NCBI GenBank assembly: GCA_950097015.1
Contig: CATNEN010000037.1
Span: forward strand, 3,782,001-3,846,000
Origin: Macrostomum hystrix
Lineage: Eukaryota > Animalia > Platyhelminthes
Reading direction: 5' to 3'
Length of the DNA stretch: 64,000 bases
Of this stretch, positions 11,474 through 30,430 are shown one piece after another. Each line of letters opens with the position of its first letter. The first letter of the stretch is position 1. The notes below the pieces were generated by a model that did not search any database, had not been told where the DNA came from, and was given only the letters and a program-made list of their open reading frames with translations. The translations under genes and the position numbers were made by a program.

Positions 11474-12330
11474 AACAACAACAACAACAAACTACAGCAA
11501 CCCTGGCCGAGGCCAAAGAGTGGGAAGCTATCAAAAAGCGCGCGCGAGCGCATAACTGCGCAGGAGGATCAGTCCGCGAGGGTCGGAGATGCCGGCATCA
11601 GTCAGCAGCAGGTCGACGAAACATTGTGTCCTCGCCTGGCCGCGCCGCCGTGGTCCCTGCAGGGAAAGCAGTAGCACATCTTGCAGGGGCTCTTGGCAGC
11701 GCTGCTCCGCACGAATAACGTGGCCGGCCAGCTGCAAGCGCCGGGTGCGGAGTAGCTGGCTTGGCCGGCAGAGCTGGGCCCGGTGGTACAGCTCGTCGTT
11801 GCTGATGTTGGTCGTGGAGTTCGGCGAGTAGTGGACTCCGAAGGCAGCGCGCAGAAGTGCAGCGTGCGCGGCGTCCAGCTGCCGCTCCTGTGAGCTGGTC
11901 AGGGTCCACGTGTGGGCGTTGTACAGGAGCACAGTTTCGATGACGGCCTGGTACAGACGGCCCCTCAGCCGGTCTGGCAGCGCGGGACACTGCATTACAG
12001 TTCGCAGGGAGCGAAACGCCCCCAGGCGAGCGCCCTGCGCCGAGCGATGTCGTCCTGCACGCTTGGCACCAGACCGCCGAGGTAGGTGAATGTCGTGCAG
12101 CGAGGCAGCAGCGCCGCCAGCCCGTTCGCATTACGACAGCGGATCTCAGCGGGCAGGTCTGCCGGTACGGTAAGCACCATCGTCTTCTTGGCGTTCACAG
12201 ACAGACCGACCACGGCTGCCGCGGCCGTCAGCTTGTCCAGCAGTCGTTGGGCTCCTTCCGCAGAGCTTGAAAGCAGCGCCAGATCGTCTGCGTACGCCAG
12301 AACGGAGAGCCGCTTCTCGGGATGTCGCCT
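11474..12330 (-). mobile_element. 5'-truncated non-LTR retrotransposon (RTE-like), RT C-terminal part, frameshifted
   Basis: LAYADDLALL RT motif, GLSVNAKKT, FTYLG, then RLYQAVIETVLLY...RRLQLAGHV...RRRGQ in a second frame. (GTT)n 3' tail at 11474-11490. Probable target duplication AGCTATACAT (11464-11473) / AGCTATAGAT (12370-12379). Confidence 0.9.
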
Positions 12331-12499
12331 GCTTGTTCTGCGACAGAGCAAGAGCAGAGCAGACAGAGCAGCTATAGATGCATCGAAGACAATTAAGGTT
12401 GGTATTAATTACTGCCACAGTACAAGCATGTGTAACTCGTGGAAAATAGTTGAATGCCGATAATGATAATATTTTGTGACATTAGCTGACTAATGACTC

Positions 12500-12702
12500 C
12501 TGTGCTCACACTTACACAGATACTGTACGCTGGCACACACACATGTACACTCTAACTATGGCTTGGAGGTTGACCCTCAGGAGCTTAAATTGAAGCCCCC
12601 AAGCCTTCTCTCCGCGGCTGCGCCCCAAATGAATGTGGCCTCGCCGAATTACAATTCCGCGGAATCGAGCTCAGGGACCTTAGTGCGAGAGGCAAACGCG
12701 TT
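12500..12702 (-). mobile_element. tRNA-derived SINE, family A, copy 1
   Basis: The reverse complement matches 24245-24400 (AACGCGTTTGC.TCTCGCAC.AAGGTCCCTGAGCTCGATTCC...GGCCACATTCATTTGG.GCGCAGCCGCGGAGAGAAGGCTTGGGGGCTT). Contains a B-box-like GCTCGATTCC. Confidence 0.7.
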
Positions 12703-13406
12703 ATCCCAAGTTGAAGGCTGATACTTTACAATATTTTACGATAATTGAAAGCTTCATCCATATTAGGACTCAGTTTTTATGTAGTCTGACTGCAAACTAC
12801 CTAGAACTGGTCACACCTGCAGTGCCAGCTTTAAGTATTAGTCTATGGTGCAAACTGTTTGTTAGGAGCAAACCTAAAGTCGCAAAATCTATACCAATTC
12901 GCTTAGACGATCTAAATTTTAGCAACGCCTAGAACAAAAAAAATCTTAAGAAGATACTCGTTAAAATTAATTGACAGTCATCGCCATTCCAGCTGAACTT
13001 CATAACCAAACCGGATAGGAAGGAAGCATATCTTAGGCATACACATGAAGGCCAGGAATGCAGAAGGTAAGCATGTAGTTTGATATCGATAGTAGTATAG
13101 TGGTATCGATCGATCGAAAGATAGTCCCAATCTTTACAATCCCGTAGGATTATTATCGCAGATTCCATCCTTGGCCCTAGATTACCATCTCTAATTCCCA
13201 TCACAGATTCCAATGTCTGATTCCCATCACAAATCCCAATCTAAAGTTAAAATCCCTACGTAGATCCCAGTCCAAAAAATATACTTCTTTCTCGAATTCC
13301 ATCCTAATAAACTAGTTCCTAAATTATGTTGTCATGATCAAGTCTCACTACTGACAAGTAGTCGTACACCTCTTGTGTAGTCGGCGAAGTTCGCCTCGGC
13401 GGTGAC

Positions 13407-16400
13407 ATGGCGACCGGCGGTGACTCGGTGGTGCCAGTTTCGGGAGGCCTGGCTGGCCGCCTGCAGCAGGAGGGCAGCATCACCTACAATGCCAGGCTGC
13501 AGGCTATGGGCCACTATCTAGGGTGAGTTTGTGCTCATAATCTTCCAGTTTCTTCAATCTTTGATCAACCAATCTCAATCAAATTAACAAAGTACTATTA
13601 AATTTTTTAGATAGTACTTTTTCTAGACGCATATCTCACTTCTCCAATCTTATTTACCCCTTTCGTTCCCATTTTCCTGGTCCCCGTTTTCTTCTTCCCT
13701 CCCCTTACCCCGCTTCTCATTTCAATTTGCCGTTCTCCCTTTCCGTACCCAATTTGCTGTTCCACCTTTACTACTCTCCATTTTTTCTCCTGTTCTTCCT
13801 CTTTTTGCTTTTTGGCAATTTTTTCCCGTTCCGGACTGTTATTTCCCTCCTCGAATTCTCTTTCACCGTATCGAGCATTGTGAGAAGCTTTTGAACCCCG
13901 GCTAGGCATATTTCTGTTGTGTTGGGCCACAGCTGGTCTCTAGTACTCGTGTATAAGAATGACTGCACCGAGTTTCTAAAGGTAAAGCAACAGCTTTGTG
14001 TTCTCTGCTAGCCACGCCCAGCAGCTATAGAGTCATGCCGCATCCGCTAGAAATCATGGAGCGACGATTGGAAGCATTTGCTCACTGCAATAGGTGAGGT
14101 CGACACTGGCAGGTGTAGATCAGAATCGAGCATCTAGATTCTTTGGAGCAGCAGAAACTGTGCAGTTTCTGTGCCACAAAATAAACCCTGCGACCTACAT
14201 GTAATTTGCGTATATTCGTTGGTCTACACATTTTATTCAGACTGCTTACCCCCTCAATATCTCACCTCTCCCCTGTCTCACCTCTCCCCTGTCTCACCTC
14301 TCCCATGTCTCACCTCTCCCATATCTCACCTCTCCCATATCTCACCTCTCCCATGTCTCACCTCTCCCATGTCTCACCTCTCCCATATCTCACCTCTCCC
14401 ATGTCTCACCTCTCCCATATCTCACCTCTCCCATATCTCACCTCTCCCATATCTCACCTCTCCCCTGTCTCACCTCTCCCATGTCTCACCTCTCCCATGT
14501 CTCACCTCTCCCATGTCTCACCTCTCCCATATCTCACCTCTCCCATGTCTCATAAGCCAGTTTTGCGTCCCAACGTTAGAGTTCAGCCGTGTAGGCATTA
14601 TTACCAGGCACACAATACATCAGATAATCTATATAGTCTCCATGCTTAGCAAATCCACCCCAAACTATTTCGCGAACCTTCGAAAGCTTGCCGGAGCCGA
14701 TGAAGCGCCGTATCCGGGCACTAAAGAAGCTGCAATTTCGCACCCTGGAAATCGAAGCGGATTTCTATCGCGAGCTGCACGTCCTGGAGATGAAATACGC
14801 CGGCGCCCACGCTGAGCAGTTTGAGCGCCGCTATCACATTGTCACCGGGTGTCGCGAGCCAACCGACGACGAATCTGATTGGCTGGAGGATTCCGAAGCC
14901 GAGCTACAATTGGCCAACCTGGCTCGCAGCATCAGCGCTAGCGGCGCGGCTTTGGAGAAGCCGGTAGACGCCGCCGAGTCAACAGCCGGCCTGCCCGGGT
15001 TCTGGCTGACCGCTTTAAAAAATGTCGAACTCATCGGCCAGATGATTCACGAACACGACGAGCCCATTCTGCGCCACCTGATTGACATCCGGGCTAGCCT
15101 GTTCTACGGCGACCAGACCGGCTTCACCTTGGAGTTTCACTTCTCAGCTAATGAGTACTTCACTAACAGTGTGCTCACTAAGCAGTACTTTATGCACATG
15201 GCCCCCGACCGGCGCCAGCCGTGGACCTACGACGGCCCGGAGATCTACCGCTGCCGCGGCTGCGACATTCAATGGTGCAAAGGCAAGAATGTCACGGTGA
15301 AGATCTTAAAGAAGGTGCAGCGTCACCGCGGCAACGGACAGAAACGGACCCTGACGAAAACTGTGGAGACTGACTCCTTCTTTAACTTCTTCAATCCGCC
15401 AACCAGGGGTAAGTCGGAGACGTACTTTAGGGTAAAAATATATTTGATTGAGTTGCGCCTAATATTAAGGCTTGATAAGTGACATCGGAGTCAGGTTGTC
15501 CATAGTGGCCTATTTCCACATGTTGTAGCCTTTGAAGGTCCAGCAGTCCGTCTAGAAAAAGGTTGGTGGCCGCCGAAGATGGAGGTGATGCAGGCACATT
15601 CGGGTGACATGCTGATCAATTTTGAAGGCCTGGCAAGGCCGCACTGAGGTGCAGTGCTGATTTGTGTATATGGGCGTATAAAAGACGGTAGCAACCAATG
15701 AGGTTGGTAGGTTAGCAACTAGTGAGGTTGGTAGGTTAGCAACTAGTGAGGTTGGTAGGTTAGCAATTAATGGGGTTGGTAGGTTAGCAACTAGTGAGGT
15801 TGGTAGGTTAGCAACTACTGGGGTTGGTAGGTTAGCAACTAATGGGGTTGGTAGGTTAGCAACTAATGGGGTTGGTAGGTTAGCAACTAATGGGGTTAGT
15901 AGGTTAGCAACTAATGGGGTTGGTAGGTTAGCAACAAATGAGGTTAGTAGGTGAGCAACTAATGGTGTTGGTAGGTTAGCAACAAATGAGGTTAGTAGGT
16001 GAGCAACTAATGGTGTTGGTAGGTTAGCAACAAATGAGGTTAGTAGGTGAGCAACTAATGGTGTTGGTAGGTTAGCAACAAATGAGGTTAGTAGGTGAGC
16101 AACTAATGGGGTTGGTAGGTTAGCAACTAATGGGGTTGGTAGGTTAGCAACTAATGGGGTTAGTAGGTTAGCAACTAATGAGGTTGGTAGGTTAGCAACC
16201 AATGAGGTTGGTAGGTTAGCAACAAATGAGGTTAGTAGGTGAGCAACTAATGGGGTTGGTAGGTTAGCAACTAATGGGGTTAGTAGGTTAGCAACTAATG
16301 GGGTTGGTAGGTTAGCAACAAATGGGGTTGGTAGGTTAGCAACTAATGGGGTTGGTAGGTTAGCAACTAATGGGGTTGGTAGGTTAGCAACTAATGGGGT

Positions 16401-19400
16401 TGGTAGGTTAGCAACTAATGGGGTTAGTAGGTTAGCAACTAATGGTGTTGGTAGGTTAGCAACTAATGGGGTTAGTAGGTTAGCAACTAATGAGGTTGGT
16501 AGGTTAGCAACCAATGAGGTTGGTAGGTTAGCAACTAATGGGGTTGGTAGGTTAGCAACTAATGTGGTTGGTAGGTTAGCAACTAATGGGGTTAGTAGGT
16601 TAGCAACTAATGGTGTTGATAGGTTAGCAATAAATGAGGCTAGTAGGTGAGCAACTAATGGTGTTGGTAGGTTAGCAACAAATGAGGTTAGTAGGTGAGC
16701 AACTAATGGTGTTGGTAGGTTAGCAACTAATGGGGTTAGTAGGTTAGCAACTAATGGGGTTAGTAGGTTAGCAACTAATGGGGTTGGTAGGTTAGCAACT
16801 AATGGGGTTGGTAGGTTAGCAACTAATGGGGTTGGTAGGTTAGCAACTAATGGGGTTGGTAGGTTAGCAACTAATGGGGTTGGTAGGTCAGCAACTAATG
16901 GGGTTAGTAGTTTAGCAACTAATGGTGTTGGTAGGTTAGCAACTAATGGGGTTGGTAGGTTAGCAACTAATGTGGTTGGTAGGTCAGCAACTAATGGGGT
17001 TAGTAGGTTAGCAACTAATGGGGTTGGTAGGTTAGCAACAAATGAGTTAGTAGGTGAGGAACTAATTGTGTTGGTTGGTTAGCAACTAATGGGACGATCG
17101 ACTTTAGCATTTTTTATCAAAATATTCATAAACTTCTACTTAAAGTAGTGTAACAATTATCTAGAGGTTTTTATAAACCAGCGTTTAAAAACTCTAATCC
17201 TTATCCTCCCTTCATTGCAGGAATCGACGAATTGAAAGACGATGTAAGTTTTGTTATCTTGTTTGTGTTTTTATGACATAATGACAAAAGTATGCTTTAT
17301 TTCTTCTTTCCTCGACAGTACAGTCTCAAAGCTGTATATCTGTATATTAGATTTTAATAGCATTGTTTCATTGTCAATTACTATTTCGATAATTGCAGGA
17401 TTCTGAGGTATTTAACGGTGGATTTGAACTCTTTCCTTATTATATTCCTAGGTTTAAATTGCGCAGTTGTGTCATATACCTTGTCCTAGAAAAATATTCA
17501 AATCACAAAAGTTTTTTGCTGTTCATAGTTAATTGTGTTACTTGATCATGTTAACAAATTTTGGTGGAATTTCATTTTAACATTGTGCTGAGGGTTGCTA
17601 GTGATTGAGTGTACATTGTGCTGAGGGTTGCTAGTGATTGAGTGTACATTGTGCTGAGGGTTGCTAGTGATTGAGTGCACATTGTGCTGAGGGTTAGTGA
17701 GTGAGTGTACATTGTGCTGAGGGTTGTTAGTGATTGAGTGTACATTGTGCTGAGGGTTGTTAGTGATTGAGTGTACATTGTGCTGAGGGTTGCTAGTGAT
17801 TGAGTGTACATTGTGCTGAGGGTTGCTAGTGATTGAGTGTACATTGTGCTGAGGGTTGCTAGTGATTGAGTGTACATTGTGCTGAGGGTTGTTAGTGAGT
17901 GAGTGTACATTGTGCTGAGGGTTGCTAGTGATTGAGTGTACATTGTGCTGAGGGTTGCTAGTGATTGAGTGTACATTGTGCTGAGGGTTGCTAGTGATTG
18001 AGTGTACATTGTGCTGAGGGTTGCTAGTGATTGAGTGTACATTGTGCTGAGGGTTGTTAGTGATTGAGTGTACATTGTGCTGAGGGTTGCTAGTGATTGA
18101 GTGTACATTGTGCTGAGGGTTGCTAGTGATTGAGTGTACATTGTGCTGAGGGTTGCTAGTGATTGAGTGTACATTGTGCTGAGGGTTGTTAGTGAGTGAG
18201 TGTACATTGTGCTGAGGGTTGCTAGTGATTGAGTGTACATTGTGCTGAGGGTTGCTAGTGATTGAGTGTACATTGTGCTGAGGGTTGCTAGTGATTGAGT
18301 GTACATTGTGCTGAGGGTTGCTAGTGATTGAGTGTACATTGTGCTGAGGGTTGTTAGTGAGTGAGTGTACATTGTGCTGAGGGTTGCTAGTGATTGAGTG
18401 TACATTGTGCTGAGGGTTGCTAGTGATTGAGTGTACATTGTGCTGAGGGTTGCTAGTGATTGAGTGTACATTGTGCTGAGGGTTGTTAGTGAGTGAGTGT
18501 ACATTGTGCTGAGGGTTGCTAGTGATTGAGTGTACATTGTGCTGAGGGTTGCTAGTGATTGAGTGTACATTGTGCTGAGGGTTAGTGAGTGAGTGTACAT
18601 TGTGCTGAGGGTTGTTAGTGAGTGAGTGTACATTGTGCTGAGGGTTGTTAGTGAGTGAGTGTACATTGTGCTGAGGGTTGCTAGTGATTGAGTGTACATT
18701 GTGCTGAGGGTTGCTAGTGATTGAGTGTACATTGTGCTAAAAATGTTCTTTACCTATTCCATAATAATCAACCATGACCAGGACGAAGAGATAGAAAACC
18801 TGTTGCAGTCGGACTTTGAAATTGGCCACTTCATTCGGGAGCGCATTGTGCCTAGAGCTGTTCTGTGCTTCACCGGCGAAGGCCTCGACGACGAGGACGA
18901 GGTGAGAATTCTGCAGTTTTTGTTTAATTTTAGCGAATCGAAATTAAATTTTTATCTCTTATAAGAACATGCAGCCGTCTCTATGCTAAAATTATATAAT
19001 TATAAAATACTCTCTCTTGGATTTTTAGAAACTTTTTACAAAACATTGTCGTGACTCATCTCTGCTAGGAGAACCATAGTCCTGATGCCTCACTATGAAG
19101 TCATTTGTCATGCGCAGCAGACTGCTTAGCCTTCATTCAGTAGGCTCTTTCTCTCTGCATCCCTGATCCCGCAGCCTCCCTATCTACCCACCTGGGCTAC
19201 CGATAGTCGCTAATGGGCATATTTAATAAGGCTGACGTGGCAGAGCACATCTGTCTATATTAATATGCAACCATTTTATTTTCATGCCCACACAATTGCT
19301 TCAGAAGCTTGCTAAGCCTACAGGAATGCCTTTCGTTATCAATCTTAGTAGTACCTTGTTATTGTTAGTTGCTGCTTCTAGTAGCAGCAGCAGCAGCAGT

Positions 19401-22400
19401 CCGGGCTGCTCGGCACAACTGCAGCAACAATCTATCGAATTGTTAATTGGGGCCGTGTTTGGCCAGTCGGTGACGGATGCCAGAAAGCGCAGCGTGCTGC
19501 GTTTCGCTCTTTCGGATCTTGGCTTCAATCCTGTTGAAGATGCCGATGCCAAGTGTTCGATTAGCAACCCGATGAAAATTCTTCCGCGTCCACTAGTTGC
19601 AATGGTGCCAGATGGCGACGCTATTCAAGCTAACCTGGCCGCCTGCGGTCTCCTAGACTCTGGCGCATTGGCTCTGATTGGGCCGGATCATCCGGCTGTT
19701 ACTGGCGCAAACCTGGCCGCCCTGGCCGCCGCCACCCAGGCCCCAATCATTGATCTGAGACCGTTCCATGCCCTGGTCAGTGAGCGGCAGCCGGCCCAGC
19801 CATTTGTGCTCCGCCTTCACCCGCCGATGGACCAGCTAGCCGCCTGTCTGGCTTCAACTATTGATCATTTCAACTGGCTTGAGGCTCTCTACGTTTACGA
19901 AAATTGGCAGGCCTGGCTTAGATTTGAAGCAACTCTTAGACGACGCGCATCATTTGAGGCTCTCTACGTGCGTCTCAGGCGCTACTTCAGTTCCATTGGT
20001 CCGGAGCCGCTATTGAATGAAATCGAACACGCCGGCTGGGCCACGGTTGTCCTGGATCTTAGTCCTGCCAGCGCCTCACACTTTCTGAGAACAGCCGCCT
20101 CACTAGGCATGGTTGGCGGCATCTATCACTACGTGCTGGTCGGCATGGACTCGGCCCAGTTGGCTTCGGAGTATCGCGGCAGCCGGTTCAACATCACCTC
20201 CTTCAGATTGGCGCCCACCGATACGCATTATTATGACCGAGTGCTGGCAGGACTGCGAGACTGGCAGCGTCAGCGGCAGCTGCGGGTGGGCGTTGGCACC
20301 GGTTCGATAGGCGACGAACACGTCAATGGCGGCCTGCCGGCCAATGGCGACGAAGAGTTCAGCCCGCTGGAGCCAGACGGACGCCTGTCATTGGAGGTGG
20401 CTCTTGTGTACGACGCAGCTCAGGTGAGACCTACAGCTAATCTCTGACATTTGGCTTCAGTCTGCTTGCAGTTTCAGTCTGCTTCTGCTTGCAGTTTCAG
20501 TCTGCTTCTGCTTGCAGTTTCAGTCTGCTTTTGCGTGTAGTTCGCCAATATTTCACTGCTATTCCACTTATTGCAGGTTCTACTAAAAGCTTTGGCGGGT
20601 CTGCAAACGAGTAGGAACCTTCTAGACGGAAGCAGAAATGGAAGCAGCAGCGGCGGCGGCGGCGGAGAGTTCTCCCGTTGCCATTCGGGAGCCGCCACTG
20701 CCAGCCACCTGTGGCCACTAGGCGCCAGCCTATGGAACTATCTGCACTCAGTTGAACTGCTCGATGTTGGTTTAACTGGCCGAATTCGTTTCGTCAACGG
20801 CATTCGAGCTGCAATTCAAGCACCGGAGAAAGAAGAGAACGGAGCAGCGGAAGCAGGCGGCGGTCTGGAGGTGTGGCATCAGCGTCGTCAGACCGGGCAT
20901 GTCCGCCTCGGTGTCTGCGACTCCACCGGTCGCCTGCGCCTCGACTCGCTATCAAAAACAGGCGACGCCTCCGCCGCCGGCGCCGCAACCCCAGCATCGG
21001 CCAGCAGTCGCCGGCTTCGCGTTGTGGTTGTGGCCGCCCAGCCGTTTGTGTGGATCAAGCGGCAGCACAGGTCGCGCTACCTCAGCGCCGAAGGCCACAT
21101 TCTGCCTGGCGTTCAGTTTCATCGGCATCATCTGGAAGGATTCTGCGTTGACATGCTGAACATGATCGCCAATCGGACTGGCATGAAGTGGTCGGTCTAT
21201 CGATCTCCTGACGACAAATACGGCAACTGCGTACGACCGCCCGGCTGTCCCAAGGAGACCGACATTCAAGAGGCTGGCATCGAGAAGGAGCGTCTGAGAT
21301 CGGAGTCTGTGGGCGGCAGCAGCCAGCCGCACCCGTGTCGCTGCCAGTGGAACGGCATGATGGCCGAGCTTGTATCCGGCCGGGCGGACATTGCTCTTGG
21401 CTCATTCACCATCACCTATGAGCGCGAACGGGTCATCGATTTCACTAAGCCGTTCATGACCCTCGGCATTAGCATCTTGTTTAAACGGCCAAAAGGCGAA
21501 AAGCCTGGCCTATTCAGCTTTCTCATGCCATTCGCTGTGGAAGTGTGGACATGCGTACTAGCCGCCTACCTTGTCACCACCGGCATCATTAACCTGCTGG
21601 GCAGGTTGTCTCCCTTCGAATGGACCAATCCGCATCCGTGTGTGCCGGATCCGCCTTACCTTGTTAACGAACTGTCGCTATCTAATGCATTCTGGTTCAC
21701 AGTTGGCACCCTGATGCAGCAGGGCTCCAATATTAGTCCCAGGGCTACCAGCTCCCGCCTAGTTGCCGTGAGCTGGTGGTTCTTCACCCTCATTCTAATC
21801 AGCTCCTATACGGCTAATTTAGCCGCATTTCTCACCGTTGAACGGGTGGTAATGCCCATTCAGAATGCCGAAGATCTGTCCAATCAGACCACTATTGAAT
21901 ACGGCCTACTGTCTGGCGGTTCGACCGAGGCATTCTTTGAGACTTCTCTCATTTCCACCTACGCTCGCATGGCTGAGTTCATGCGCAAACGGCCGGGTGT
22001 TAAAACTACTAGCACCAGCGCCGGCATTGAGCGTGTCAAACGCGGCGGCTACGCCTTCCTAATGGAATCTGCCATGATCGAGTATCACGTAGAACGCGAG
22101 TGCCAACTGCAACAAATTGGCGGCCTCATCGACAGTAAAGGCTATGGCATTGGGGTGGCGCCGAACAGGGAGGAACTGGGCGACCTGCTCACGCTCAAGA
22201 TTCTTGAGCTGCAGCGGGACCAGGAGCTGCAGGTGAGCTAGTTGCTCATCATAAATCATTGCTCACTATGTCGACCAATTCACACTTCGACTTTTACCTC
22301 AATATAATGAGTATCGCTCATAGTGTGTGTGAGTATCGCTCGTAGTGTGTGTGAGTATCGCTCATAGTGTGTGTGAGTATCGCTCGTAGTGTGTGAGTAT

Positions 22401-24877
22401 CGTTCGTAGTGTGTGTGAGTATCGCTCGTAGTGTGTGTGAGTATCGCTCCTAGTGTGTGTGAGTATCGCTCATAGTGTCTGTCTTAGAATTGCTCATAGT
22501 GTCTGTCTTAGAATCGCTCATAGTGTCTGTCTTAGAATCGCTCATAGTGTCTCTTTGAGAATCGCTCATAGTGTCTGTCTGAGAATCGCTCTTAGTGTCT
22601 GTCTGAGAATCGCTCATAGTGTCTCTTTGAGAATCGCTCATAGTGTCTCTTTGAGAATCGCTCATAGTGTCTGTCTGAGAATCGCTCATAGTGCCTCTTT
22701 GAGAATCTCTCATAGTGTCTTTTTGAGAATCGCTCATAGTGTCTGTCTGAGAATCGCTCATAGTGTCTGTCTGAGAATCGTTCATAGTGTCTCTTTGAGA
22801 ATCGCTCATAGTGTCTGTCTTAGAATCGCTCATAGTGTCTGTCTGAGAATCGCTCATAGTGCCTCTTTGAGAATCTCTCATAGTGTCTTTTTGAGAATCG
22901 CTCATAGTGTCTGTCTGAGAATCGCTCATAGTGTCTCTTTGAGAATCGCTCATAGTGTCTGTCTGAGAATCGCTCATAGTGTCTGTCTGAGAATCGTTCA
23001 TAGTGTCTCTTTGAGAATCGCTCATAGTGTCTCTTTGAGAATCGCTCATAGTGTGTCTTAGAATCGCTCATAGTGTCTGTCTTAGAATCGCTCATAGTGT
23101 CTGTCTGAGAATCGTTCATAATGCCTCTTTGAGAATCTCTCATAGTGTCTTTTTGAGAATCGCTCATAGTGTCTGTCTGAGAATCGCTCATAGTGCCTCT
23201 TTGAGAATCTCTCATAGTGTCTTTTTGAGAATCGCTCATAGTGTCTGTCTGAGAATCGCTCATAGTGTCTCTTTGAGAATCGCTCATAGTGTCTGTCATA
23301 GTGTCGCTCATTGAGTCGCTCATAAGCTATTCTGCAACCACCCGCAGACGCTGAAGAACAAATGGTGGAAAGAGACTGGCATCTGCGGCAGTCAGGACTC
23401 CCAGAATTCCAAGAACGCCAATCCGTTAGACACTCGAAGCATTGGCGGCATCTTTCTAGTGCTAATCGGTGGTGTTTTAGTGTCAGTCTGTCTGGCACTG
23501 GCAGAGTTTGTTTGGAATTGGCGCAAAATGCGTCGCATGTCAATTGCCAGACAGGACAGTCACGCCGAGCTCTGCCGCGGCATTTGTAAACAGGCTGCAT
23601 CCTCTTTGAATTGTTTCGGCTCTAACAAGAAGCCTCACAGATCTGATCCCACTATTGAAATTCCTCTACTGCCGCGTCAGCAGCAGCAGCAGCAGCCCCC
23701 ACCAGCACCGGAGCTGCCGCCACCGCCGCCGCCGCCAATTCCGCCTAGACGGCAGTCATCGATGTCTAGCAATCCTAGGCGACGCCAACACTTTGGCTAC
23801 ACCGCTGATGGCGGAGTTGAATATGACATTTAGATGGCCCTGCAAAGCCAAGGGGGCGCACATAAGCCAGTGCTTTGATGAATCCACCAGTGGGCATAAA
23901 TAGTATACTGCCCTAAATTTGTATCTATCTATGTCCACTTTAAAGCTGATGTCCGTTTTCATCAGCAAATGAACAAGCATGCCAAGATATACGCCTTTGC
24001 TACTGAAACTGCCTAAAAACGTACAAAAATGTTAATTAAAAAGTGACCATTTTTTTATTTCACTCGCAGTTTGACGATGACGAAGAAGATGAAGAGGTTC
24101 GTCCCTGTTGCTGGTTTTTTTATGGTAGTTTCTTCGCTTTTAAAAGTTAATACTTTTTCATGTTTTTTTGCTTTTTTTTGCTTGTCATAGTTACGTTTTT
24201 TCACAGGTTTTTAATATGGTACTATGATTAATAGTGGCAGAGCGGTTAACGCGTTTGCGTCTCGCACCAAGGTCCCTGAGCTCGATTCCGTGGCGAGGCC
24301 ACATTCATTTGGAGCGCAGCCGCGGAGAGAAGGCTTGGGGGCTTGTCGTGCAATTTACGCCCTCGAGTACCAACCTCCAAGGCACAGTGAAGTGTACACT
24401 GCCGGAAGATGAGAAAGGGCAGATGTACACACCTGTGTGAGCGTGTGTGCTCAGGAATCAGCGAAACGGGCAGAATTGCCTCCTCGCTGGCTGCTGGTCT
24501 AGTGTCACCACATGACTGCCTTCTGCAGCTCTTCTATTATTATGTGATTCGTACTTTAATGATAGGGGAAGTATTTTCTTGCACAGGAAATTTGTGAATT
24601 CGGATTTTTTTTAAAGGAAGACATTTTAGGATTGGGATGATAACTGATCGCAATACTCCTGTGATGATTTGCATCCCCCCATATCCATTAGGTAAGTTTA
24701 AGCAATTCGCCACTTTCCTAAAGCTATGTTTGCAAGCCCTGAATGTCTGCCTGAATTCCACTATTTGTGTATAACTAACAGTAAAATTCACCTAATTCTC
24801 AGGATGACGATGCAGACAACGAGGTGAATTATCTAGACGAGGAGGAGGAAACGGAACAACAGGTGGCAAGACGTTAA
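13407..24877 (+). CDS. NAP1L: Nucleosome assembly protein 1-like (NAP1/SET family), multi-exon
   Basis: Proposed exons: 13407-13522; 14650 or 14687-15408; 17221-17243; 17399-17407 (microexon); 18782-18901; 24070-24096; 24803-24877. NAP motifs: LPEPMKRRIRALKKLQ, PGFWLTAL, FTLEFHFSANEYFTNSVLTKQY, CDIQWCKGKNVT, DSFFNFF, DFEIGHFIRERIVPRAVLCFTGE, plus an acidic tail. The core exons are secure; exon 1, the exon-2 acceptor and the last two exons are less certain. Confidence 0.85.
14268..14550. repeat. 16-bp minisatellite (CTCACCTCTCCCATRT)n in NAP1 intron 1
   Basis: Direct periodicity. Confidence 0.93.
15690..17092. repeat. 24-bp G-rich minisatellite (GGTTGGTAGGTTAGCAACTAATGG)n in NAP1 intron 2
   Basis: Direct periodicity. 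Source of the VANLPTPL pseudo-ORF. Confidence 0.96.
17580..18738. repeat. 33-bp minisatellite (GTACATTGTGCTGAGGGTTGCTAGTGATTGAGT)n in a NAP1 intron
   Basis: Direct periodicity. Source of the MYTQSLATLST pseudo-ORF. Confidence 0.96.
19284..23833 (+). CDS. Ionotropic glutamate receptor subunit, kainate-like (non-NMDA), 3 exons
   Basis: Exons 19284-20423, 20577-22232 and 23348-23833, all phase 0. Signal peptide and ATD, [51 protein letters not shown] (Q/R site = Q), SYTANLAAFLT, MESAMIEY, GGLIDSKGYG, KWW, and M4 SIGGIFLVLIGG. Start could be the ATG at 19284 or 19326. Confidence 0.95.
20458..20530. repeat. Short 23-bp tandem repeat in iGluR intron 1
   Basis: (CAGTCTGCTTCTGCTTGCAGTTT) about 3 copies. 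Confidence 0.8.
22311..23320. repeat. Composite 22/24-bp minisatellite in iGluR intron 2
   Basis: GAGTATCGCTCRTAGTGTGTGT units grade into GAGAATCGCTCATAGTGTCTGTCT units. Confidence 0.95.
24236..24540 (+). mobile_element. tRNA-derived SINE, family A, copy 2
   Basis: A-box TGGCAGAGCGG and B-box-like GCTCGATTCC. The body is homologous to 12500-12702 (-). The 3' boundary is approximate. Confidence 0.7.
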
Positions 24878-25337
24878 GCACTGTGATACTAACCAAACCC
24901 ATGATAGCAAGTACTGAAAACTGCCAAATGCTGCCTTTTATTTTAACCAAAATATTCCAATTTAAAGGATGTGCAATAATTATAAAATAAAAAAATGCAT
25001 GCATAGTACTACCTACTTATAGTAGCTATTCTAGTCTTGAATCTATTTTTAGTTGTCCGGCTAGCCAGTTTTCATTTCTTACCTTTCTTACTGTTTTTGT
25101 GCTTTATGGTTATATTTTCCTTAGAAAACTACTTTTGCATTTTCCAAAAATGTTTTATTTTTTATTTTCTCAATGGTTATTACCACTTACGAGATATTTT
25201 AACTCTGACCAAATATCAGTGATTTATCAGTGCGTCAAATACAGCAAATCACTTCCCTAATTGCCAAAACTTGGGCAGACTGCTTTCTTGACTCATTTCT
25301 TTCTCAGGAGATCACAAATTATTGCCCTGCACACCGC

Positions 25338-25790
25338 CCAGTGACTGCAGATCAGCCGCTAACAAGCATGCTTGGACACACACACAGCCCAGTGACTGCA
25401 GATCAGCCACTAACAAGCATGCTTGGACACACACACAGCCCAGTGACTGCAGATCAGCCGCTAACAAGCATGCTTGGACACACACACATCCCAGTGACTG
25501 CAGATCAGCCGCTAACAAGCATGCTTGGACACACACATACCAGTGACTGCAGATCAGCCGCTAACAAGCATGCTTGGACACACACACAGCCCAGTGACTG
25601 CAGATCAGCCGCTAACAAGCATGCTTGGACACACACATAGCCAGTGACTGCAGATCAGCCGCTAACAAGCATGCTTGGACACACACACAGCCCAGTGACT
25701 GCAGATCAGCCGCTAACAAGCATGCTTGGACACACACATAGCCAGTGACTGCAGATCAGCCGCTAACAAGCATGCTTGGACACACACAGT
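25338..25790. repeat. 49-51-bp minisatellite between NAP1 and APC4
   Basis: (CCAGTGACTGCAGATCAGCCGCTAACAAGCATGCTTGGACACACACAYAGC) about 9 copies. Confidence 0.95.
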
Positions 25791-25841
25791 CCAATGAAAC
25801 TGTAATCTTAAAGATGTTTTCTCATCTTCAGCCATCAAATC

Positions 25842-28800
25842 ATGACCAGCGAAGCGGCAGGTGGCCTACCCGAGTACTCGTTCCGCACTAGCTCTGACAA
25901 GAGCCTCCCAGGCCATCAAATTCGCCTGATGAAAGCCTCGCCACGCATGGATTTGCTGCTGTTGGCGGCAGACAATGGCGATGTGCTGCTGTACCGTTGG
26001 GGTTGGGAGCGGGTCTGGCTGGTTGCCAAGCCAAGGGATCTGCGCGACTGTCCGGCTGCTGACGGTGACAAGGACAGTGATTGCTGCCAGTCCTGTCACC
26101 TGCATCGACTGGCGACCCGACGGACAGGTGGCGTTGGTGGCTTACAGGTGAGAACTGGTTTATTGTTGGCTTACAGGTGAGAACTGGTTTATTGATGGCT
26201 TACAGGTGAGAACTGGTTTATTGATGACCTATATGTGAAGGATATCAGTTAGTAGTGGTTGACAGATGAGGAATCCCACTTGTTTCACGTGTGCTTTGCG
26301 CATTTGTCATCTTCAGTTCCTGTTCAAATTTTCTCATTCAATTAGCGACGGCCGCATCCGACACCTCAGCCTGGAAGATGGCAGCGTGCTGCACGAAGAT
26401 CACGTGACCAGACCTGACGACAAGAGCCGCTCAGACTGCGAGGAGCTCGACACTGATTTAGACGAAGGCCCGGTGCTGTGCAGCCACTGGGCCGTGCTGG
26501 CCAATCGTCAGTTCAACGAGCCCTGGACCCGGGCTCGCGACGCTCTGCCGGTCTTCTCCGACATCTTCGGCAACGGCGGCGGCTCCTCAACCGCCGGCAT
26601 CGTCGACTGGACGGCCTCGCGTCGTATTGAGCGCCAGTTAAGCATGCTGGCGCTGACAACTCGGCGCCGGCTGCACCTGCTGGCCTATGGCATCTGCCGA
26701 CTGTGTCGGGTGTCGCTGGACGAGTTGTCCATGAACGCTAGTCGGATCTGGCAATCTGGCCTCTACCGGCCAGTGTCCGTCATGCTGTCGGACAATTTGA
26801 CCTGCGTCAGCCTGCTGGCTCGGCTCTCAAATAAAGTCGAAAACAACGAAGAAGCCGGTGGTAGTCCGCAGTCCATGCTGCTGCAGTGCGACACCGGCCT
26901 AGCAGCAGCTGGCCGTTACGAGCGGGTGAGGCAGGTTGCCCTGACTGTGGTGCAGCTGACCCAGCTCACTGCAGCTGTGCGCCGCTGTCTCAAGGACATG
27001 CGAGAGTGCTGGGAGGACTCGGTAATTTGCTTGTTGTCTCCTCTGATCCTACAAATCATTTTGTATCTGTAGAATCTGAAGATGAAAACAACTGATACTT
27101 AAAATTAATCAGGTATAAGCTCAGGTCCATAAACTCAAGCTGTTGTATTATCTGATTCCAAAAATCTATTTACAGTATTCCCAGATCCCTATAGACAATA
27201 CTCCACAATCCCGGATCCCAAAAGACAATCCACCAAAATCCCAGATCCCAAAAGGCAATCCACCAAAATCCCAGATCCCAAAATGCTAATTCCCCATAAT
27301 CCCAGAATACCCAGATCCTTAATCTAAATCTGCTTTAATCCCATATCCTTAAAGTCAATCCGCCATGATTCCAGATTCCCAAAATCAAATCACAATAATT
27401 TTAGATCCCCAATTCCAGGTCCCAAAGGTCCCTGGTCCCAGCCTATCCTAACAAGCAAGCCACTCCCCACCCAAAGGTGCACGAGTTGGACCAGAAATTC
27501 GCCGACTACAGCAAGGATCGCGACGAATACGCGCTGGCCATGGGCGAGCCTGATTGGCAGCTCCGCACTGATCTCATGGCCCTGCTGCTCACCGGCCATT
27601 GTCACGCCAAATTTCGTGAATTCCTCTGCGAAGGCCTGTCCAGAGCTGGCCTAGTCCGCATCGGGCGCGGCATCGAGGCCAGCCTGTGCTCCGTGCAGCG
27701 GCACAACGCCAGGCAGCTGCAGACTCTGCTGTTTGCCGCAATTTTTCATCTCAGCGAGCTGGCCGATCTGGCGGCCACTGGCGTCGGCGAATTCGGCGAC
27801 GATGCGGATGACGAGCTGGGCGAACGGCGATTCCAAGCTGGCGAAGATGCTGAAGAGTCTGAGATTGTAGTGGATGACGAGGAGAAGGAAGATGGAGGCC
27901 TCGGCAGGCTTCGGCTAGGTGGGAGTTGTACTCAAGATACCTACTCACCTACTTAAGTGCAAACAGTCACTCAGCCGCAGCTATTGGCTGTAAAACTGTT
28001 GTGTACATTCAGTCGGTGGACTGCAAATGTTCTGTCCCAGCAGATGCTGGTACCCTTTCAATAGCTGGATTGTAACAATTTGGAATTAAGCTTGTTACTC
28101 AACTGGAGATAATTTCCCCTTGGTCCAAGATTCGAACTCGCGACCCTGTCGGTCAGAAGTACAAAACAATTTTTTCCACATGAGCTAAATGTAAATTGTA
28201 CTTTAATCAATGCTCGAAGTTTACATGTACTTTTATTTCTTTGTTAAAGTACATAACTGTTTTTCCGCCCAGGCGAGCTCAGTCGCAGGCGCGCAGTTGA
28301 CGCGCTGAGCTACGCCGGCACCGCTCTGGCCAAATCGCTGGAACTCGGGGCCGTCATCGATCGCACCCGGGACAGCCTGCGCGCCTTCTGCGAATGGCTG
28401 TTCGTGCAGATCCTTCGCCTGTCCAAGGAACCCGTGCCCCGCTCTCTGCAGCAAACTACAGCTCAGCGGCGCCGCCTGGTCTCCGAGTTCATTCGACACC
28501 AGCTGGCCGAAGGAGACGGACAGAGAAGATTCCGCCTGGAACTAGTCGGACAGTATCTGGCCGAGGCTCCCCTGGCCGCCGTGCCCGACTGTCCGACCGT
28601 CTGGCAGCAGGTGCTGGAACGACATCTGAAGCGGCAGCGGGAGATGGAGGAAGTGACTGAGGCTGGCGGCACGCGGCGATCGACGCCGTCCTGTCTGCTT
28701 GTGCAGCCCGACAAGGCGGCTTCAATGGCGCAGTGCCTCAATCGACTGTGCGACATGGTGGCCTCCGGCTGCCGGCTGGCTGAGCCCCGGAGGCTGAGGC

Positions 28801-29571: not shown

Positions 29572-30430
29572 TGAAGTTCTAAGGTTTTTTATTAGGAATT
29601 CGACTGTTCGTGACTCTTCAACCTATCCCCTTATGAAAACATGAATTTTTGTAACTACGAAAGACATGTAACTATTGTTATTATCATAAATTATTATTAA
29701 TTGTAAAATTACTTGTCTCCATCGCTTTCGTCAAGTAAAATCTGGTTCAGTTATAAAATTTGGCTCTCTGTCCAATGAAACTATTAGTTTCTTTGTTGCA
29801 TTTCGCATCTTCCGATATCTTTTTGGTGTTTATTTAGGTGTATTATATTCACGGATAAAAAATAAACTTAGACTGAATGCGCTCTTGTTTCAACGCTCAT
29901 ACGTCAACGTGAAAATGTATATGAATATGAAAAATTTGTTTTCTCGTCTCGGTTATTTATAGTTTCAGAGGCAACTAAATAAAAAGTCGAAATAGCATTT
30001 GCACGTGATAGTAAACATTTCTTACTGTCAGTTTGACGTTTAGGAAGCTTAGTTCAAAATCATTAGTTCCTCAAAAAGCTTTTAAAATAATTTTTGTGTT
30101 GTAAAAGTATCAGTATCAGTATACTAATTTGTATCAGTATAAAGCGCAATGAATAACTATAGCTATGGAGTAGATATGCATCAAGTTGATTCACCTTTTC
30201 AAACGAAACATTTGTTATGTTTTTTTAACGTAAACGTTGTTTTCGTTTTCGCGGAAAATTCTGTTTATCACTTTAGTTTAGCACTGCACGCTAAGGTTGT
30301 TTGCCCTATGTAATGGTTTCCCGATGGATATTCAGATTGCACCCACCCACCCACCCACCCACCCACCCAGATTGATATTCGATGAATCAAAAACTCTATA
30401 AAATTAAACAAACTTGGAGTGTCGAAACTT

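Follow-up and report, generated by a model that had tools for sequence, protein, structure and literature searches.

A kainate-like glutamate receptor gene on the same strand within a NAP1 intron of the flatworm Macrostomum hystrix

In the cholinergic locus (VAChT in the first intron of ChAT; unc-17/cha-1 in C. elegans) one gene is nested within another on the same strand. That arrangement is conserved over long evolutionary distances, and its genes share a promoter and a 5' exon and serve one pathway. In the mouse, intron 2 of CAPN5 contains OMP in the same orientation, and splicing of the host mRNA bypasses it (PMC6549253). Other mammalian nested genes, often retroposed and intronless, include Mcts2 in an intron of H13 and Nap1l5 in an intron of Herc3 (PMC11694760; PMC3192792). 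Nested genes can cause intron retention, exonization and premature polyadenylation of the host (PMC3192792), and their expression can shift the polyadenylation or isoform choice of the host (PMC11694760; PMC3192792). In the trans-splicing flatworm Macrostomum lignano, same-strand genes are carried on one primary transcript in spliced-leader operons (PMC8629364). This study concerns a 64,000-nucleotide (nt) stretch of the genome of a relative, Macrostomum hystrix (GenBank assembly GCA_950097015.1, contig CATNEN010000037.1, positions 3,782,001 to 3,846,000; hereafter the window), in which an ionotropic glutamate receptor (iGluR) gene lies in an intron of the nucleosome assembly protein gene NAP1.

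The two genes are very likely a conserved host/nested pair, in which a 5.2-kb intron of NAP1, located after the NAP domain and before the acidic tail, holds a complete, same-strand, kainate-like iGluR gene. The intron spans 18902-24069 on the + strand and encloses the whole receptor coding region (19284-23833), which has the same orientation. Because the joints 18901>24070 and 24096>24803 were found in RNA and the arrangement recurs at two loci of M. lignano, the layout goes beyond chance.

RNA evidence was obtained through a run search. Four small runs from one study (organism B) each contained 40-46% of the words of the window, and an additional run with another organism label contained 6%. 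Three of the organism-B runs (X2, X3 and X4) and the run with the other label (X1) were mapped as contigs on 18851-24850. Since introns are missing from their contigs, the organism-B runs evidently represent RNA. X1 yielded two near-identical pieces of receptor exon 2 and was not classifiable as RNA. The NAP1 joints 18901>24070 and 24096>24803 were identified in X2 (depth ~51) and X4 (~46), with GT..AG borders after the cut shift given below. The iGluR joints 20423>20577 and 22232>23348 were identified in X2, X3 and X4 at a depth of 4-6, and the receptor contigs had about one tenth of the depth of the NAP1 contigs. In the same three runs, depth was 0 within receptor intron 2 and 0-2 in the part of the NAP1 intron just upstream of the receptor (19051-19250). 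As the NAP1 joints and the receptor's own joints are both present in RNA, both genes are expressed and the host mRNA skips the nested gene. NAP1 mRNA splices over the entire receptor gene to 24070-24096 and then to 24803, while the receptor yields a spliced RNA with joints of its own.

An earlier note on this DNA, made from the letters alone, had proposed the complete same-strand receptor gene within a NAP1 intron. The gene model, the Pfam domains, the RNA joints and the M. lignano layout all agree with that proposal. The note had further reasoned that the NAP1 transcript must skip three receptor exons and a poly(A) site, which is what the joint 18901>24070 in X2 and X4 demonstrates. Chimeric or truncated NAP1 forms, which it also anticipated, were absent from the listed joints, which come from contigs and cannot exclude such forms. 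The features of the two genes are as follows.

13407-13522, + strand: predicted NAP1 coding exon 1 (MATGG...LQAMGHYL-G), donor AGG/gtgagt, phase 2
14687-15408, + strand: NAP1 main exon with the bulk of the NAP domain, 62% identity to M. lignano NAP1 P0001, E 9e-95; also matched by tblastn
17221-17243, + strand: predicted 23-nt NAP1 exon (G-IDELKDD), which restores the frame; M. lignano ...TIDELGSD matches
17399-17407, + strand: candidate 9-nt NAP1 microexon (DSE), optional, in frame, with good AG/GT sites
18782-18901, + strand: NAP1 exon with the end of the NAP domain (DEEIENLLQSDFEIGHF...GEGLDDEDE), donor GAG/gtgaga (Pfam and RNA joint 18901>24070)
18902-24069, + strand: NAP1 host intron, 5168 nt, with the entire iGluR coding region inside; GT..AG joint (cut +2), depth 51.4 in X2 and 45.8 in X4
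19284-20423, + strand: iGluR exon 1, which encodes the signal peptide and the bulk of the amino-terminal domain (ATD); Pfam ANF_receptor E 9e-17, RNA contigs from 19344 on
20424-20576, + strand: iGluR intron 1, 153 nt, with a 23-nt repeat x3.6; GT..AG joint 20423>20577 in X2, X3 and X4
20577-22232, + strand: iGluR exon 2, end of the ATD, S1, M1-M3 (MQQG, SYTANLAAF) and most of S2; Pfam Lig_chan 1e-40, Lig_chan-Glu_bd 2e-28, RNA contigs
22233-23347, + strand: iGluR intron 2, 1115 nt, nearly all a 24-nt minisatellite x42.6; GT..AG joint 22232>23348 in X2, X3 and X4, zero RNA depth inside
23348-23833, + strand: coding part of iGluR exon 3, end of S2, M4 and cytoplasmic tail; stop TAG 23831-23833, LKNKWWKETG conserved with M. 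lignano
23834-24201, + strand: iGluR 3' untranslated region (UTR), at least this long, overlapping the NAP1 microexon (contigs X3-22, X2-15 and X4-28)
24070-24096, + strand: 27-nt NAP1 microexon (FDDDEEDEE), phase 0, acceptor cgcag, donor gttcgt; RNA joints on both sides
24097-24802, + strand: final NAP1 intron, with an interspersed repeat at ~24234-24500; GT..AG joint 24096>24803 in X2 and X4
24803-24877, + strand: last NAP1 coding exon (DDDADNEVNYLDEEEETEQQVARR, stop TAA), phase 0; RNA joint, AATAAA at 24986

The host gene spans 13407-24877 on the + strand and, as modelled from homology and splice sites, encodes 360-363 amino acids (aa). Both a NAP domain and an acidic C-terminal tail were found, as expected of the NAP1/nucleosome assembly protein family (Pfam PF00956). 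More than 1200 NAP1 proteins were matched by 14700-15407, and the best of these was M. lignano NAP1. The in-frame junction of exon 1 with 14687 yields ...MGHYLGLPEPMKRR, and the M. lignano counterpart is ...MANYKQLPEPVKRR. A counterpart of the DSE segment (17399-17407) was sought in M. lignano NAP1 and none was found. In 18782-18901 the Pfam NAP profile was matched over its last 35 positions, up to the profile end (E 2e-10). This exon is open at its 3' end (...GLDDEDE/gtgaga) and has no stop. The earlier note had placed the open exon end at 18901 and the acidic phase-0 exons at 24070-24096 and 24803-24877, and every one of these coordinates was confirmed. The tail after ...YFTGE is DDEDE-FDDDEEDEE-DDDADNEVNYLDEEEE..., the latter part of which comes from the two downstream exons joined in RNA. 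In M. lignano NAP1 the tail after ...FTGEGLEDED is YESEDDE-GEDGDEDDMEEDEDERVIGQ-LRN. The M. hystrix tail FDDDEEDEE-DDDADNEVNYLDEEEETEQQVARR equals this in length and character, with an aromatic residue followed by an acidic run and a short basic end, and it resembles M. lignano ...GEDGDEDDMEEDEDERVIGQLRN. Homology extends to the tail of P0002, an mRNA contig from a related species.

If translation continued unspliced from 18902, it would meet an in-frame stop at 18962-18964, 61-63 nt into the host intron. NAP1 might then stop before the receptor by read-through, and the exons at 24070 and 24803 would belong to another transcript or be due to chance. X4 does show excess depth in the bin 18851-19050. 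However, the joints 18901>24070 and 24096>24803 occur in contigs with a depth like that of NAP1, the tail shows homology with the tails of M. lignano NAP1 and P0002, and the exon order is the same in M. lignano. We consider this explanation highly improbable. The earlier note had seen the main danger to its proposal here, in a NAP1 that ends before 19284 with foreign tail exons, and the two joints show a different transcript. Read-through NAP1 may occur as a minor isoform.

The nested gene has three exons, all of phase 0, separated by GT..AG introns. Its coding region (19284-23833, + strand) encodes 1093 aa with no internal stop and one terminal stop, and there are two in-frame candidate starts, ATG 19284 and ATG 19326. 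Pfam identified ANF_receptor in exon 1, followed by Lig_chan-Glu_bd, SBP_bac_3 and Lig_chan in exon 2. The iGluR domain order ATD, S1, M1-M2-M3, S2, M4 is present, and the protein aligns over its full length with M. lignano and Lingula receptors. The translation keeps MQQG, SYTANLAAF, the Arg in TITYERERVIDF, GGST (Ser-Thr) and the Glu in FLMESAM, which we take, from what is known of GluA2 and GluK2, to be the pore and gate residues and those that contact glutamate. Judged from the translation, these motifs and residues are intact.

In a search of the PDB, the best matches of the receptor were GluK5, GluK2, GluK1 and GluK3 (E 1e-106 to 1e-101, 344-359 bits), and the AMPA receptors GluA2-4 were lower (E ~1e-94, 305-318 bits). 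Nearly all named homologues outside M. lignano are labelled kainate receptors. The label "kainate-type" used in the earlier note is reasonable on this ranking and these names. The S1 lobe carries a ~35-residue insert with four cysteines between DDKYG and WNGM (~21228-21338); a comparable insert is present in the M. lignano receptor and absent from other kainate-like receptors.

The NAP1 gene of M. lignano (P0001) spans 20 kb. At locus L001 the NAP1 exon ending GEGLEDED ends at 22498. It is followed on the same strand by an uninterrupted iGluR open reading frame (ORF) at 24472-27591, which encodes 1039 aa and is 49% identical to the M. hystrix receptor. A 21-nt microexon at 28233-28253 (YESEDDE) is the counterpart of 24070-24096, and further tail exons lie at 29711-29770 and 30047-30058. 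L005 is a duplicated locus with ~92-94% DNA identity and the same order, and its iGluR is 98.4% identical to that of L001. The possibility that M. lignano g1 and g2 are parts of one transcription unit was rejected, as they are two duplicated loci. The same NAP1 intron of both loci holds an intact, intronless, same-strand orthologous receptor, so the synteny comparison recommended in the earlier note returned the same arrangement twice. Because dN/dS between the two copies is 0.12, the nested receptor of M. lignano is under purifying selection. An M. lignano paralogue (P0122; L002), 75% identical, is free-standing and intronless and does not lie in a NAP1 gene. No nested gene was found at the oyster NAP1L1 locus (6.4 kb), the one outgroup locus read. 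Since the nesting is shared with the M. lignano loci, it predates the split of the two Macrostomum lineages, and it is absent from that single outgroup.

These loci also bear on the idea that the receptor was mis-assembled into NAP1 or is a pseudogene. The region is rich in minisatellites, which can mislead assemblers. However, contig X3-22 physically links the last receptor exon, the NAP1 microexon and the next intron, and the two independently assembled M. lignano loci have an identical order. The receptor ORF is intact, spliced and expressed, and its M. lignano copies have the low dN/dS given above. We give this idea the least credence of all, close to none.

At neither L001 nor L005 does the M. 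lignano annotation in GenBank include a model of the nested receptor. In UniParc, an older model of 1222 aa (P0241) uses a cryptic AG to link NAP1 ...GEGLEDED with the receptor at LRFGAIFG. The missing calls and the fused model most likely reflect annotation mistakes to which same-strand nesting gave rise; a genuine chimeric transcript is a lesser option.

The receptor transcript extends well past its stop codon. Contig X3-22 spans 23494-24201 with 0 mismatches, X2-15 extends to 24097 and X4-28 to 24082, all at a receptor-like depth of 4.6-6.2. These contigs pass the 27-nt NAP1 exon and its donor unspliced. Because the upstream NAP1 intron is almost uncovered, the contigs through 24035 are best read as receptor 3'UTR, not as NAP1 precursor. 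Since the 3'UTR continues across the NAP1 microexon, as far as 24201 or beyond, the nested transcription unit is not confined to the intron and shares sequence with a host coding exon. The ATTAAA at 24035, which the earlier note had offered as a poly(A) signal, is present and is the sole canonical hexamer between the stop at 23833 and 24780, but it does not mark the sole 3' end, as the contigs reach 24082, 24097 and 24201. Logan proteins P0207 and P0239 were tried as transcripts of this species for locating mRNA ends and were rejected at 44% identity.

The receptor contigs break downstream because of the highly repeated element at 24234-24500. RNA-contig depth over this interspersed repeat is in the thousands, with many variant letters. 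A second copy at 12544-12703 is inverted and 81% identical, and adjoins reverse-transcriptase-like ORFs with a YADD motif (11531-12351, - strand). The repeat at 24234-24500 gave no tRNA with ARAGORN and no match in Rfam.

At the other end of the gene, the receptor mRNA would most likely start at its own promoter within the intron, at ~19240-19340, in neurons. The promoter-like elements described in the earlier note are present, namely TGACGTGG at 19233 (proposed CRE) and TATATTAA at 19256 (TATA-like). Short motifs such as these and ATTAAA carry no statistical weight, and M. lignano does not conserve them. The TATA-like element would place the start near 19286, and such a start would favour ATG 19326, which opens straight into a good predicted signal peptide (MPFVINLSSTLLLLVAAS...).

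Several points weigh against the picture given so far. The RNA data are assembled contigs from one study (X2-X4), from which starts, ends, strand and minor isoforms are not readable. The joints listed for X3 do not include those of NAP1. In 18851-19050 the depth of X4 exceeds by ~33 units what 49 nt of NAP1 exon would account for. X3 contributes a contig at 18960-19156 that aligns with 11 gap letters and 6 mismatches. The excess and this contig could represent a NAP1 read-through or intron-retaining form, the other haplotype, or transcription upstream of the receptor or its proposed promoter. No non-coding conservation was found upstream or downstream of the receptor between this locus and M. 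lignano, and the proposed CRE and TATA elements gain no support from this comparison. Expression of the receptor in neurons is assumed from the usual behaviour of both families.

The X3 contig, intronic and upstream of the receptor in one run, would also suit an operon-like arrangement. Here the receptor would have no promoter of its own, and spliced-leader trans-splicing would free its mRNA from the NAP1 primary transcript at an acceptor such as ttgcttcag/AAG (19304/19305), which is preceded by a pyrimidine tract (19296-19304). With this acceptor in phase 0, an AUG at the end of the leader would be in frame with the receptor. In M. lignano, 30% of genes are trans-spliced, 15% are in operons, and the leader ends in ATG (PMC8629364). 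However, no leader-bearing contig was seen at the 5' end of the receptor, which has in-frame ATGs of its own at 19284 and 19326. Receptor depth is ~1/10 that of NAP1, and the depth of the upstream intron is 0-2 in X2 and X4. A housekeeping host would moreover force receptor RNA in all cells. The M. lignano spliced-leader sequence was found neither in the 64-kb window nor in the retrieved loci, and no leader-like loose end was listed at 19284-19344, where contigs alone were searched. We consider an operon-like origin of the receptor mRNA unlikely.

It is also doubtful that the pair is a functional unit, either through trans-spliced release of the receptor or through receptor 3'-end formation that competes with NAP1 tail splicing at the 27-nt microexon. 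Receptor-making cells would then have tail-less NAP1 or less of it. Such coupling, if true, would explain the retention of the nesting across Macrostomum.

We favour a receptor gene with its own promoter inside the host intron. The first receptor exon lacks an acceptor, so the spliceosome would not recognize it in the many cells that make NAP1 only. The internal exons and the weak poly(A) signal would then be skipped along with the rest of the intron. The pair probably goes back to a receptor copy without introns (retroposed or intron-stripped) that was inserted into the NAP1 intron before the two Macrostomum lineages split. The nesting probably persisted because a nested gene is hard to move out without breaking its host.

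Neither of the receptor introns (20424-20576 and 22233-23347) has an equivalent in the two intronless M. lignano genes, where the residues on either side align gap-free. The sole outgroup for intron positions was a kainate-like Lingula gene with at least 10 introns. The receptor introns correspond to Lingula residues 275 and 742, which are 11 and 20 residues from the nearest Lingula exon borders. They are candidate lineage-specific gains and consist largely of tandem repeats. With this one outgroup, the comparison is suggestive of an intronless copy that entered the NAP1 intron and, in the M. hystrix lineage, subsequently acquired two introns filled with minisatellites. In both genes, almost every intron is occupied by a minisatellite array of its own, whose unit measures 16-51 nt and is repeated up to 58 times. 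The M. lignano host intron likewise has a long array (L001 22720-23540). In the window, the repeat search located these arrays.

14260-14552, 15689-17093, 17580-18738, 20461-20542, 22308-23311 and 25330-25788: minisatellite arrays

The receptor lies near the 3' end of its host, unlike the nested gene of the cholinergic locus, which is in the first intron. We know of no functional link between NAP1, a histone chaperone, and iGluRs. One close likeness is to OMP in CAPN5, where the nested gene is on the same strand and the host mRNA is spliced over it. However, OMP has a single exon and ends within the intron, whereas the iGluR gene has three exons, offers two in-phase acceptors to the host donor and has a 3'UTR that overlaps a host coding microexon. 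As with Mcts2 and Nap1l5, the nested gene occupies a host intron and may derive from an intronless copy. Here NAP1 is the host and not the nested retrogene, and the pair is conserved between two flatworm species and not between mammals. Effects on host isoforms are seen in the mammalian pairs, whereas the NAP1/iGluR pair is known from gene layout and contig joints. The genes of M. lignano spliced-leader operons are sequential, not one within an intron of the other, and no leader was seen on the receptor here. The earlier note had called same-strand nesting uncommon. This was overstated, as mouse and human have "broadly similar" numbers of host/nested pairs in the two orientations (PMC11694760).

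The locus is a well-supported addition to the known class of same-strand nested genes and introduces no new principle. It is a natural case for how a host transcript ignores a multi-exon inner gene on its own strand. Because phase 0 is shared by the host donor and the two nested acceptors, chimeras made by mis-splicing would stay in frame. The in-phase acceptors, the overlap of the 3'UTR with the microexon and the conservation in M. lignano, where transgenesis and in situ methods exist, are useful peculiarities of the pair. Since the receptor is unannotated at both M. lignano loci and fused to NAP1 in P0241, same-strand nesting most likely leads to missed and chimeric gene models in this group.

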